DNA from: Macrostomum lignano
Taxonomy: Eukaryota
NCBI GenBank assembly: GCA_002269645.1
Contig: NIVC01002258.1
Location: forward strand, 1-64,000
Direction: 5' to 3'
DNA length: 64,000 bases
Below the pieces are notes generated by a model. The model searched no databases, was not told the origin of the DNA, and saw only the letters and a program-made list of their open reading frames with translations. Below, piece by piece: positions 26,145 through 35,610 of the stretch (the first letter of the stretch is position 1; every line of letters starts with the position of its first letter). The translations under genes were made by a program, and so were the position numbers.

Positions 26145-27051
26145 ATGCTGCTCGCTCGAATTTTAGCCCTGCTGGGAGCCGCAGCAGTGGCTAACTCCCT
26201 AGTGCACCACTACTTTATCCAGTATCCAAAGAACTCGGAAATTACCAAACGGCTGCACAGCGGCTTCGAATACGGTTTAGTTGGCACGGCCCAACTGCCA
26301 GTCGGCATTTTTGATGGCGTCTATAGAGACAGGACCGAGAAACTGTCTGGCAGGATGCGCTGGCTGCCCTGGGTGCGCCGATTGATGGACGAATTTCTGT
26401 TTGAGGAAAATTATATGAACGCTACGAGAATAGTGCCGGATATGGTGATTGAAGACAAGCGAATGGCGTACCTACCTGTAGCCAAAACCGTCAATGAAAA
26501 AAGACTAAACTTTTTGCTTTTTCATTTCACTACCCGGTTTCTGGAAACGTTCATGGAGTTTGAAAGGGTGCTGGCCTCAAGCGGCATCAAGGCCGATAGG
26601 TCAGAGCGTCAGGACCTCTTGACCCAGATGTACCATTTTGCCTATTGCGACGCAATGTCTCGCATCGATGCAATTGACAAGGACCTGTACAATCGCTGCC
26701 CGAACCCATGCAAATCGGGGCGACTGTACAACAACGCTGACAAGTGTCCGAGCGGAAATCGCGACTGCAATCCCTGCGTGCAGGTCACCGAGCATCTGGC
26801 CAACCCAGTCTGCACCCAGAGTTCCCGGATCTGGCGCCGGAGCTTCACTTGCAACTGCCGCCCTGGCTACTACTGGGATATTAATACGCTGAGTTGCAGC
26901 GAAGAAAAGGACTTCTTCATGACCTTGAGATTGCGCAACAAGTTGAGGATCAGCATTGACTCGCTAAATATCTTCATCGACACTAAGCTGCCAATTTTGC
27001 GCGCCGGGTTCTACAGTAAATCTTCGAAGGGCAGGACCTTCAAAACTTTTG
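26145..27051 (+). CDS. Exon 1 of a ~1,690-aa type I membrane protein, join(26145-27051,28738-29422,30970-31685,31796-33619,34043-34345,34969-35610): signal peptide, helical region, EGF-like module
   Basis: Signal peptide MLLARILALLGAAAVANS; CPNPC...CTQ...CNCRPGYYWDINTLSC; donor G|GTGAGT at 27051/27052 (phase 1). Confidence 0.85.
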
Positions 27052-27896
27052 GTGAGTTCTGTTTTATATTATACGAGGGCATGAAATTATGATTAATGAT
27101 GATTGGCGATGGCTGATAATGCTTATTGCGATTGTAAGGTGAAAAAACTTTGGATTCTCAGCATTGATGTGCAAAACACAAGAGCTCCATGCAAGTTTGA
27201 CCAGAGCTTGTGGGCTAATGCACGAAAAAGTTCGAGTTAAACAGTTACTGTTAGCTTATGTTCAAGTGATTCTGGTTTCCCTGGGAGCTTTCAAGCTTAT
27301 TACAGCTTTAGTATTAAAACTTATAGTCTATGGCCGCGATTATCTTTTCAGTTAGAGCAAACAACTGAATGCACATTTTATCACAGATTCTATATTGCCT
27401 AGATGTAGCATTTTCTGCCATTCTAGCATTATCCAGCCGCAGTGTATTATAACCATAGACTATGGCTTCTTGCTGCACTCTAGCATTACAGTAGCAATTG
27501 AAAGAAAAGATAAGAATAATACTCTTTATAGAGTAATTAAAATAGAATTAAAAGTAGCATAACTCAACATGTACCCGTATTATGAATAGCTGTGTCTGCA
27601 GCAGTCCTACCCCTAGACAGCCGAATTAAATGGGAAATATGGTGTCGAAAGTCGAAAAACACTAGTCGCATCCATGAAACTATCACCTGCTGACGATAAG
27701 GGCATCGGGCTCAAAAAGGACCCGATACACCTTGAACCGGTGTCGTCAAAGACGAATACTGGATGAAGAGTGTGTTCGGTTTTTAGCGTCTACACAAGCT
27801 GTTGCGCATTGCTGTCCGGTTTCAAGCCTTCATTTTTAAAAAGTATATCTTTAACTTCATTCTGCAGGGATTCTTCATTGAGATCGTTAAGTAGAT

Positions 27897-28643
27897 GTAG
27901 TGCAGCCCCTGTGTCGGAGTGTGCAGCCCCTGTGTAGTAGTGTGCAGCCCCTGTGTCGGAGTGTGCGGCCCCTGTGTCGGAGTGTGCAGCCCCTGTGTCG
28001 GAGTGTGCAGCCCCTGTGTAGTAGTGTGCAGCCCCTGTGTCGGAGTGTGCGGCCCCTGTGTAGTAGTGTGCAGCCCCTGTGTAGTAGTGTGCAGCCCCTG
28101 TGTAGTAGTGTGCAGCCCCTGTGTCGGAGTGTGCAGCCCCTGTGTCGGAGTGTGCAGCCCCTGTGTCGGAGTGTGCAGCCCCTGTGTCGGAGTGTGCAGC
28201 CCCTGTTTCGGAGTGTGCAGCCCCTGTGTCGGAGTGTGCAGCCCCTGTGTAGTAGTGTGCAGCCCCTGTGTCGGAGTGTGCAGCCCCTGTGTCGGAGTGT
28301 GCAGCCCCTGTGTCGGAGTGTGCAGCCCCTGTGTCGGAGTGTGCAGCCCCTGTTTCGGAGTGTGCAGCCCCTGTGTCGGAGTGTGCAGCCCCTGTGTCGG
28401 AGTGTGCAGCCCCAGTGTAGGAGTGTGCAGCCCTCTGTGTCGGAGTGTGCAGCCCCTGTGTAGTAGTGTGCAGCCCCAGTGTAGTAGTGTGCAGCCCCTG
28501 TGTCGGAGTGTGCAGCCCCTGTGTAGTAGTGTGCGGCCCCTGTGTCGGAGTGTGCAGCCTCTGTGTCGGAGTGTGCAGCCCCTGTGTCGGAGTGTGCAGC
28601 CCCTGTGTCGGAGTGTGCAGCCCCTGTGTCGGAGTGTGCGGCC
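27897..28643 (+). repeat. Intronic minisatellite, 21-bp unit GTGTGCAGCCCCTGTGT(CGGA/AGTA)
   Basis: Direct reading; source of the CSPCVGV and HTPTQGL pseudo-ORFs. A solo unit lies at 29471-29496. Confidence 0.97.
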
Positions 28644-28737
28644 TCTGTTCATAGAAAGTGTGCCAGAAGACACCTGAGTTGTAAGCAAAATTTCGCCTGC
28701 TCAGCAGCGTAATTGCGTCTCCCATCTTCGCTTACAG

Positions 28738-29422
28738 AACTAAATCCCGAGACCAGATTCCATCCGTTTGGACACGACGCCTGCTCAACGCTGAGAATCG
28801 CCAGGCGCATGCGGTCGAATTGGATGAAGCTTGGCGGCATCCCTGCAGCTGACCCTGACCCAATTGTGTCAGTGGATCTGCCGCATCCGATTTTGGTGGA
28901 ACGCGTGCACACCATCTACGCACACTCATACTGTTCGTTGGGGATGAAGGAAACAGACTATTTATTAAATGTGGACTTTCTCGATTTGTCTACCCTGCCA
29001 AAAATGCGACCGAAGGAATGCTTGAATGAATGCTTGAATTCCAGCACCTGCAATTATGTTCTGATGAGTCACACTGCAACTGGTGGTTTATGTCATTGCA
29101 GCTTAAATTCCAACGCATTCTCACATGACGGCAAACCGCTCTCAGCTGGGTTCAATGTCAGTAAGGAAGGCGCATGTCCAGGTGCCCATTGGTACACCTG
29201 CTCCGCGTACTTTAAGGGTTGCGCAATCTGGCCGCCACGCATGGTCATCTCCAGCTTGCCCGGAAATGATGTTGAAACTGTCAGGAGGGAAATGCCCTGG
29301 CAGGATGTGCGTCTCACCGACATTTGCATCAATTCGTATTCGAAATTGCTATCAGCGTACAGTGTGCACACCAAGAACCTAGATGGCGACTTTACCAAGT
29401 GCTTACTAATCTGCCAAAGACG
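28738..29422 (+). CDS. Exon 2 of the membrane-protein gene (WSC/PAN-like Cys module)
   Basis: Acceptor CTTCGCTTACAG|, phase 1 matches exon 1; KECLNECLNSSTCNYVLM...LCHC; donor CG|GTAAGT (phase 2). Confidence 0.8.
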
Positions 29423-34042: not shown

Positions 34043-34345
34043 GGATGCGAATCAAACGCGGGCACGAGGAAAAGCGATACCATAAAGATGGGAAACTCGG
34101 CCTGTTTCGTGCAAGCGCTACAGCCCGAATCGGAGCGCAATGTATGCTTCAACGCTTTCAGCGGCTCGGATGCACCTGTTGTGCCCCACATCCCTTACAC
34201 GTGCGGCTGCCGAGGTAAATCGCAGCCAGACACCTCGCTACCGTTTGAGAACTGCCTAAAGGAATCGAGCGCTTGTAAGAACGTCTTCTGCGGCGAGGGC
34301 ATCTGTACTGACACACCCAATGGAGGCTGGCGCTGCTTGTGCAAG
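34043..34345 (+). CDS. Exon 5 of the membrane-protein gene (EGF-like modules)
   Basis: Branch-like CTAAT at 34021 and acceptor AG at 34041-34042 (weak). The join gives CTVNLT|GCESN; CKNVFCGEGICTDTPNGGWRCLCK; donor AAG|GT inferred from phase. Confidence 0.72.
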
Positions 34346-34367
34346 GTTGTAACTGTGTTTATTAGTG

Positions 34368-34925
34368 GTAGCAGTAGTAGTAGTAGTAGTAGTAGTAGTA
34401 GTAGTAGTAGTAGTAGCAGTAGTAGTAGTAGTAGTAGTAGTAGTAGCAGTAGTAGTAGTAGTAGTAGTAGTAGTAGTAGTAGTAGTAGTAGTAGTAGTAG
34501 TAGTAGCAGTAGTAGTAGTAGTAGTAGTAGTAGTAGCAGTAGTAGTAGTAGTAGTAGTAGTAGTAGTAGTAGTAGTAGTAGTAGTAGTAGTAGTAGTAGT
34601 AGTAGTAGTAGTAGTAGTAGTAGTAGTAGTAGTAGTAGTAGTAGTAGTAGTAGTAGTAGTAGTAGTAGTAGTAGTAGTAGTAGTAGTAGTAGTAGTAGTA
34701 GTAGTAGTAGTAGTAGTAGTAGTAGTAGTAGTAGTAGTAGTAGTAGTAGTAGTAGTAGTAGTAGTAGTAGTAGTAGTAGTAGTAGTAGTAGTAGTAGTAG
34801 TAGTAGTAGTAGTAGTAGTAGTAGTAGTAGTAGTAGAAGTAGTAGTAGTAGTAGTAGTAGTAGTAGTAGTAGTAGTAGTAGTAGTAGTAGTAGTAGTAGT
34901 AGTAGTAGTAGTAGCAGTAGTAGTA
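34368..34925 (+). repeat. Intronic (AGT)n microsatellite, ~185 units
   Basis: Direct reading; source of the poly-S/L/T/V pseudo-ORFs. Confidence 0.99.
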
Positions 34926-34968
34926 CGCAATGCAAAATGCACATCTGCTACGTCTGATCGCTTCTTAG

Positions 34969-35610
34969 GCCGGCCGAGTGCTGGAAAAGGATGGCCTGTG
35001 CAGCCAGCGTGATCCGATCTATCTGTTCACCGCCTGGTCGGATTGGTCCCACTGCGAACCGCCCTGCGGCCTGGTGCGCCACCAAACCAGCAGCCGCACC
35101 TGCCTGCTCGACTCGCTGGAAAGCTGCCGCAACGCCACCCCGGATAATGAGGTTCTCCGCAGGCGAGTCTGCCGATCCCGCGCCTGTCGCCGCCATCTCG
35201 GCCAGGAGGGGCTGAACACCTACGAGGAGCTCACAGGTGAAGCTCTGGACCTGGTGGCCGGCAGTCTAGCGCTAATCTCTGTTGCCATAGCAACCTCGGC
35301 TGCTTGCGGACTCTTCCTAGCTCTGGTCTGGATTACTAGTCCGGCGATGAGCCGCCGGCTGCTGGAGGAGTCTCTGTGGTTCATGCTGGTGTCCAGGAAC
35401 CGCATGGCCCGAGTTGTCAACCTGCCGCTGCTGCTGGTCAGCCAGCTGCGCCGCTGGTACAAAAACCGCCGGCTTCTGCCTGCTGCTGCTGGCGGAGAGT
35501 CGAGCCGCACCTCTGCTGCCGCAGCTGACGAGGCTGGAGAAGCTGAACAAGCTGATGAAGCTTTGAATAGCGGCGATAACGAAGGCCCAAACAAGCAGAA
35601 AGACGAGTAG
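34969..35610 (+). CDS. Exon 6 of the membrane-protein gene: end of EGF, TSP1 repeat, transmembrane helix, cytoplasmic tail
   Basis: Acceptor CTTCTTAG| (phase 0); CLCK|AGRVLEKDGLC; WSDWSHCEPPCG...RTC...RRVC (TSP1); TM LVAGSLALISVAIATSAACGLFLALVWI (~35251-35334); stop TAG. Confidence 0.88.
   Translation, partial: AGRVLEKDGLCSQRDPIYLFTAWSDWSHCEPPCGLVRHQTSSRTCLLDSLESCRNATPDNEVLRRRVCRSRACRRHLGQEGLNTYEELTGEALDLVAGSLALISVAIATSAACGLFLALVWITSPAMSRRLLEESLWFMLVSRNRMARVVNLPLLLVSQLRRWYKNRRLLPAAAGGESSRTSAAAADEAGEAEQADEALNSGDNEGPNKQKDE

Follow-up and report, generated by a model that had tools for sequence, protein, structure and literature searches.

What does the gene starting at position 26145 of contig NIVC01002258.1 of the flatworm Macrostomum lignano encode: the secreted protein of the public annotation, or a longer receptor that carries a membrane anchor? 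To answer this we analyzed a stretch of 64,000 nucleotides (nt), referred to as the window, which corresponds to positions 1-64000 of this contig in assembly GCA_002269645.1 (Mlig_3_7). GenBank lists for the locus (tag BOX15_Mlig014286g1) the protein PAA59475.1 of 1,171 amino acids (aa), labelled "hypothetical protein", whose annotated coding sequence spans 26145-33003 and covers exons 1-4 only. We consider it probable that the locus is one gene which, when intact, encodes a membrane glycoprotein of type I with a length of ~1,692 aa, in which an EGF-like module precedes six divergent WSC/PAN-like modules and two or three further EGF-like modules, a TSP1-like repeat and a cytoplasmic tail come after them. 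The finding is a truncated public model of a lineage-specific mosaic receptor, built from known module types in a new arrangement, and the copy in the window may be decaying. For comparison we used a second copy in the same assembly (L002, on NIVC01002615.1) and the paralogue A0A1I8HCA5 (P0003).

Six exons with GT/AG borders make up the model (Table 1). They total 5,077 nt; once two positions within exon 4 are each given one extra base, the sum is 5,079 nt, which corresponds to 1,692 codons and the stop. A preliminary description of the locus, made from the sequence alone, had proposed six exons, five junctions and 5,079 nt (1,693 codons including the stop), all of which we could reproduce exactly, and the junction peptides CLLICQR/RCSNVMFLSS, CTVNLT/GCESN and CLCK/AGRVLEKDGLC given there were all found in the model. 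The same description called the gene hidden, which does not apply to exons 1-4, as these are already present in GenBank as PAA59475.1. Over this part the model is 100% identical to PAA59475.1, which ends at a frameshift-induced stop, and junctions 1-3 are the same in both. Since the gene models of Mlig_3_7 were built from RNA-seq and transcript assemblies (PMC5730564), exons 1-4 are transcribed. Junction 4 (exon 4/5, …LT/GCESN…) is confirmed by the paralogue A0A1I8HCA5, and junction 5 (exon 5/6, CLCK/AGRVLEKDGLC, 34345/34969) is predicted from its phase, the AG acceptor and the completion of a six-Cys EGF pattern.

The long spurious open reading frames (ORFs) across the gene interval are tandem arrays within introns 1, 2 and 5. 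A continuation of exon 5 into the (AGT)n array of intron 5 as a poly-Ser stalk was considered and rejected, as it gives an EGF module without its sixth Cys, followed by a stop.

From its sequence the corrected protein is predicted to be a type I single-pass membrane protein, with an N-terminal signal peptide and one transmembrane (TM) helix on the C-terminal side. The Kyte-Doolittle profile shows only two 19-residue maxima, at 1574-1603 (2.33, peak at 1581-1599) and at 1-20 (1.96), and all eleven N-x-S/T sequons are located in the ectodomain. The most prominent feature of the ectodomain is the repeated motif C-x3-C…CxC, of which we counted nine overlapping core matches against a mean of 0.16 and a maximum of 4 after shuffling of the residues. 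Six modules (M1-M6) could be delimited, in agreement with the number of about six proposed before. The EGF-like module at residues 1456-1490 shows the canonical six Cys, is split by the exon 5/6 junction and reaches 18.2 bits with Pfam EGF (cut-off 21.5), while the remaining EGF-like stretches are atypical in pattern; UniProt names the protein 'EGF-like domain-containing'. The TSP1-like repeat scores 16.3 bits with TSP1_CFP_C, 15.0 with TSP1_spondin and 11.2 with TSP_1, each below the respective cut-off. No Pfam family was found for the N-terminal region of ~165 aa. The preliminary description is supported in so far as it proposed one gene whose product is single-pass and of type I, starts with a signal peptide, has one TM helix and bears EGF-like and TSP1-like motifs.

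Table 1. Features of the receptor gene and its predicted protein (nucleotide positions in the window, residues of the corrected 1,692-aa model; a slash marks an exon border)
Feature	Position (nt)	Strand	Residues	Details
Exon 1	26145-27051	+		ORF from the start codon; GTGAGT donor at 27052; identical to the N-terminus of PAA59475.1; includes the start of the linker
Hydrophobic leader (signal peptide)	26145-26201	+	1-19	by hydropathy; exon 1
N-terminal region, ~165 aa	26202-26696	+	20-184	Cys-poor (one Cys); without family match; exon 1
EGF-like	26697-26897	+	185-251	exon 1
Linker		+	252-364	starts in exon 1, remainder in exon 2
Intron 1 tandem array	27900-28648	.		21-mer, 36 copies; long spurious ORFs on both strands
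Exon 2	28738-29422	+		acceptor cttacag/, donor /GTAAGT; junction peptide KTFELNPETRF in PAA59475.1
Six C-x3-C…CxC modules		+	365-1208	M1-M6
M1	28923-29240	+	365-470	exon 2
M2	from 29313 (exon 2) to 31132 (exon 3)	+	495-585	first half in exon 2, second half in exon 3
Intron 2 tandem array	29725-30629	.		19-mer, 48 copies
Exon 3	30970-31685	+		exon 2/3 junction in PAA59475.1
M3	31433-31657 (core)	+	to 760	exon 3
Intron 3	31686-31795	+		110 nt, borders GTAAGT…TTTCAG
Exon 4	31796-33619	+		M4-M6, spacer, partial EGF-like
M4	31987-32172	+	834-895	exon 4
M5	32278-32613	+	931-1042	exon 4
M6	32833-33110	+	1116-1208	exon 4
Frameshift site 1	32934-32940	+		T7 where the intact frame requires T8; creates stop 33001-33003
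Frameshift site 2	33120-33121	+		CC vs CCC in L002; sole gap in the exon 4 alignment to L002
Spacer, ~130 aa		+	1209-1342	exon 4
EGF-like stretches		+	1343-1490	last one (1456-1490) canonical
Partial EGF-like	33512-33604	+		exon 4
Exon 5	34043-34345	+		EGF-like modules
Atypical EGF-like	34046-34255	+		exon 5
Canonical EGF, first five Cys	from 34274	+		exon 5; last Cys in exon 6
Intron 5 array	34363-34925	.		(AGT)n, 188 copies; open frames read poly-Ser or poly-Val
Exon 6	34969-35610	+		starts with the last EGF Cys
TSP1-like repeat	35026-35187	+	1499-1552	WSDWSHCEPPCG; six Cys, by inspection
Predicted TM helix	35251-35331	+	1574-1600	sole strong internal hydrophobic segment
Tail, ~92 aa		+	1601-1692	acidic end
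Stop codon	35608-35610	+		exon 6

The reading frame in three gene copies

The full-length frame of the window copy depends on the two sites in exon 4, and the preliminary description had corrected both of them by adding a T. This is correct for the first one, which lies in a T7 run, but the base missing at the second site is more likely a C, as the window reads CC where L002 reads CCC. A comparison of the three copies shows a different state in each of them: the window copy (Mlig_3_7) is broken at both sites (T7 and CC), L002 (also Mlig_3_7) shares the broken T7 but is intact at site 2 (CCC), and A0A1I8HCA5, a UniRef/WormBase-type entry that presumably stems from the older ML2 assembly, is intact at both, reading YTIFFSQRL at site 1 and MLPESIECYPS at site 2. 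The latter shows 95% protein identity and keeps all Cys of the aligned region except C318, and its frame runs through both sites and the exon 4/5 junction. At least one genomic copy is intact through both frameshift sites. Adding a single T to L002 results in an uninterrupted ORF of 1,692 codons with all splice sites conserved. Furthermore, the frames downstream of the frameshifts are open for 80, 178, 101 and 213 codons; they are coding sequence, or were so until very recently. A 36-nt GT…AG intron at site 2 was also considered and rejected, as the other introns measure 110-1,686 nt and L002 is simply one C longer.

The strongest competing explanation is that the window copy and, with respect to site 1, its twin on NIVC01002615.1 are recently disabled redundant duplicates in a neopolyploid genome, with the transcript carrying a premature stop in exon 4 and being degraded or giving a non-functional product, and the function, if any, residing in the intact third copy. 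We give this slightly less than even credence. Mlig_3_7 is a Canu assembly of PacBio reads that was polished by Pilon alone using Illumina DNA and RNA-seq reads, and duplicated blocks with at least 95% identity make up 180 Mb of it (PMC5730564). Despite this polishing, with reads that handle homopolymers of 7-8 nt well, T7 is common to two separately assembled contigs, and the protein annotated at L002 (P0004) shares its out-of-frame tail with PAA59475.1, which favours a real lesion. In exons 1-3 the window copy and L002 are separated by 34.5 non-synonymous and 12.5 synonymous differences, giving a ratio of non-synonymous to synonymous changes per site (pN/pS) of 0.76; this value cannot be clearly told from that of neutral evolution and fits a relaxed constraint on copies that are redundant in a neopolyploid genome. 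The second lesion, CC instead of CCC, is one of only ~5 differences in exons 4-6, and residue 318 is an odd C in the window copy where both other copies have Y. The full-length reading is also weakened by the link between exons 5 and 6, for which the sequences compared offered no transcript or protein evidence, and by the literature searched, where full text and the supplements of M. lignano papers yielded neither expression nor phenotype records of Mlig014286.

On the other side, both defects are differences in homopolymer length (T7 vs T8, CC vs CCC), and the deletion of a base in a homopolymer is the typical residual error of a PacBio consensus. Over 5 kb of coding sequence neither copy shows a stop codon or a non-homopolymer indel, no splice site is damaged, and polishing with short reads is unreliable at duplications of ~99.9% identity. 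Whether the frameshifts are uncorrected consensus errors of the PacBio assembly or genuine lesions that a redundant copy acquired recently is about evenly balanced, and a single gene with an intact full-length form is for us still the probable reading. Should this form exist, the annotation in public use is wrong, with 521 residues including the membrane anchor missing, and a predicted secreted protein would become a surface receptor. The locus is also an example of how gene models in the duplicated Mlig_3_7 assembly are truncated by indels in homopolymers.

The divergence between the window copy and L002 is patchy. Within 29343-29387 (residues 505-519, N-terminal part of M2) we found nine replacements and two silent changes in 15 codons, while exon 4 with its 1,824 nt differs by one substitution and the CC/CCC indel. 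The patch in M2 could result from gene conversion from another copy, from diversifying selection or from a mosaic consensus. The intron structure is polymorphic between the two copies as well: intron 1 of L002 contains ~700 nt extra (6051-6748) relative to 27386-27394 of the window, and intron 5 carries an (AGT)n array of ~430 nt in L002 and of 563 nt in the window.

The cysteine-rich modules and the WSC family

In order to judge whether the six modules are WSC domains, as had been proposed, we scanned them singly against Pfam, where the WSC family (PF01822; PROSITE PS51212) has a curated cut-off of 27.8 bits. WSC was the best family for M2 (16.8 bits, E=0.0082), M3 (20.2 bits, E=0.00071) and M4 (17.3 bits, E=0.0056), and M1 gave a faint match to PAN_2, which is not significant (E=1.5). 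All eight WSC cysteines are present in M2 (C499…C573) and M6 (C1119…C1195), with Cys spacings of 25/4/15/2/16/4/8 and 17/4/21/2/16/7/9 that resemble the 26/4/18/2/18/4/9 of the WSC domain of Kremen1. As in Kremen1, both modules end with CG[GN], which is CGG in M2. The full eight-Cys pattern, which was drawn up after the sequences had been seen, occurs twice in the model compared to a mean of 0.002 in 2,000 shuffles. The other four modules, M1 and M3-M5, are degenerate and retain mainly the C2-C5 core (C-x3-C…CxC). In Kremen1 the WSC cysteines form four disulphides (1-6, 2-4, 3-5 and 7-8), and the domain shows a PAN-like fold in which an antiparallel sheet of five strands packs against a single helix (PMC5014086). 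The paralogue fragment A0A1I8ID58 bears the UniProt title 'WSC domain-containing protein', which implies that some other WSC profile passes its threshold there.

Several results weigh against a WSC assignment. No Pfam domain in the protein, be it WSC, EGF or TSP1, attains its curated threshold, Pfam does not report WSC on the full-length protein, M1, M5 and M6 show no match to WSC, and M5 and M6 show no match to any Pfam family. Alignment of a module profile with two solved WSC sequences (Kremen1 and 9n3u) by hhalign resulted in a probability of 7.8% (P=0.004), and the profile found no matches in PDB sequences or among 5.8 billion proteins. AlphaFold2 models of M2 and M6 are of low confidence, with a predicted local distance difference test (pLDDT) of 44.8 and 47.3, respectively, and Foldseek searches with both models gave nothing at E below 0.5. 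PDB sequence searches, for which the profile as well as M2 and M6 served as queries, gave matches at chance level only, such as those to STE50, proteasome β7 and a leucine-rich repeat (LRR) protein, and these were discarded.

These results would also be expected if the modules were an unrelated, Macrostomum-specific disulphide-rich repeat that only mimics part of the WSC Cys pattern. The Cys content points in the same direction, as several of the eight Cys are absent from four modules and most modules have an extra cysteine (C-x3-C-x3-C). We nevertheless regard such a repeat as rather unlikely: three modules independently pick WSC with E-values down to 7e-4, M2 and M6 combine eight Cys at near-identical Kremen1 spacing with the terminal CG[GN], a paralogue carries the WSC name in UniProt, and the order strand-helix-strand-strand in the low-confidence models of M2 and M6 is compatible with the description of the Kremen1 WSC domain (PMC5014086). 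From their sequences the modules are likely to be of a highly derived WSC/PAN type, two complete and four degenerate, and are candidate members of the family. Of the WSC identity proposed before, the family preference of M2-M4 and the eight Cys of M2 and M6 hold, while the scores stay sub-threshold, the hhalign result is weak and AlphaFold2 is uninformative.

That the annotated 1,171-aa protein is itself the true product, secreted and composed of the N-terminal region, one EGF-like and five and a half WSC-like modules, with exons 5-6 being 3' untranslated region or unrelated, appears quite improbable, because even if it is GenBank's model and the second locus is annotated with the same C-terminus, its stop splits M6 in the middle of the eight-Cys pattern and adds an out-of-frame tail of 21 aa with two extra Cys, the shifted frames downstream stay free of stops and code for a TM helix as well as for EGF, TSP1 and conserved Cys modules, and the paralogue is annotated straight through.

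Comparable receptors and possible function

A phmmer search with residues 1-1171 against 1.84 billion representatives gave no homologue outside M. lignano and found the second M. lignano locus only, and a word-index search with the whole protein as well as with its C-terminal 484 aa returned M. lignano copies only. Because of this, the protein appears to be taxonomically restricted as far as the searched databases show, in line with the lineage-specific origin proposed in the preliminary description. The one further match, to a Cys-free bacterial tandem-repeat protein (P0005) for which 22 weak stretches were summed, was rejected as spurious. A full-text search for WSC together with thrombospondin, EGF and transmembrane found nothing relevant, and the domain combination appears to be undescribed. 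Nevertheless, new mixes of common extracellular modules are routine in animal genomes, and as the locus is already annotated as a hypothetical protein, to call it an undescribed system, as had been done, is too strong.

Four groups of known proteins invite comparison. Kremen1/2 (Kringle-WSC-CUB) are, like the flatworm protein, type I membrane proteins with a WSC-type module in the ectodomain, and M2 and M6 match the Cys spacing of Kremen1. They differ in having a single WSC domain instead of six tandem WSC-like modules combined with EGF and TSP1, and homology between them and the flatworm protein is not detectable at the level of the protein sequence. Neither Kringle nor CUB gave a match at E ≤ 10 in any piece, and the Kremen triplet is not found. 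Fungal cell-wall integrity sensors of the Wsc1 type have one WSC domain followed by a Ser/Thr-rich stalk and carry neither EGF nor TSP1. These sensors share with the flatworm protein the succession of signal peptide, WSC module(s), single TM helix and short cytoplasmic tail, which is how a surface sensor is arranged (PMC9024836), but in the latter the modules are in tandem and the host is an animal. The solved Wsc1 chain 7pz2 gave no sequence match from the modules.

Polycystin-1, the sea-urchin REJ-type receptors and other mosaic adhesion receptors are membrane-anchored proteins with large mosaic ectodomains in which WSC is combined with other adhesion modules. The flatworm protein resembles them in presenting a mosaic ectodomain on a membrane anchor, but it has a single TM pass and not eleven, and Pfam scans of it found none of the PKD, REJ, GPS, PLAT and C-type lectin families. 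Tandem module arrays are typical of PAN proteins. Such an array, together with the faint PAN_2 match of M1, links the flatworm protein to PAN/Apple proteins, whose module is a relative of the WSC fold (PMC5014086); in contrast, the flatworm modules contain a CxC motif and end with C…C…CGG, both of which are features of the WSC and not of the PAN type.

By analogy with type I mosaic receptors, the intact protein most likely resides in the plasma membrane, where it would serve as an adhesion or recognition receptor. Its tandem WSC-like modules would then offer an extracellular ligand, either a glycan or a protein, a multivalent surface for binding, the EGF and TSP1 modules might act as stalk and matrix-contact region, and the short tail could couple the receptor to intracellular partners. 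WSC domains are commonly described as carbohydrate-binding. However, the WSC domain of Kremen1 contacts a protein, Dkk (PMC5014086), and the binding of glycans and the recognition of gametes or microbes suggested in the preliminary description are not supported; the latter would be speculation.

A more far-reaching possibility is a Macrostomum-restricted receptor family with an unrecognised N-terminal domain of ~165 aa, highly derived tandem WSC domains and homeologous copies that diversify patchily, as in residues 505-518 of M2, where two copies that are nearly identical elsewhere differ at nine positions. This would fit a rapidly evolving recognition molecule for mating, gametes or microbes in a hermaphroditic flatworm under strong sexual selection; we consider this possibility a long shot. 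The full-length form, if real, would be a case from an animal in which WSC-like modules in tandem occur together with EGF and TSP1. Beyond this it is one among many lineage-specific mosaic extracellular proteins, and the result corrects an annotation in a modest way but does not reveal a system of a new kind.

Surroundings of the gene

A tblastn search of the model against the 64-kb window found no second copy of the receptor gene in it. Both copies of the receptor gene have a small EF-hand (calmodulin-like) gene on their upstream side, at 21108-21596 (minus strand) in the window and at 1089-1559 in L002; thus, the two contigs represent duplicated or homeologous blocks and not a local tandem duplication. 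Between this gene and the receptor gene, the window contains a segment of ~1.55 kb (24036-25590) with two gag-like ORFs on the minus strand (24543-25019 and 25032-25370; Pfam DUF7041, E=5e-12). At the same position L002 has only 176 nt (4070-4245), and the segment looks like a transposable-element fragment that entered the window copy only, a short distance upstream of its receptor gene.

Downstream of the gene, long CT-rich and other tandem arrays occupy 35849-36946, 37797-39700 and 52043-54814, and an ORF with C2H2 zinc fingers is present on the plus strand at 47150-48190 (Pfam zf-C2H2, E=3e-14). The ORF of 923 aa at 52043-54814 matches the Pfam families SapB_1 and Rhamnogal_lyase with no stretch being individually significant, and it is most likely derived from the repeats and not a gene.

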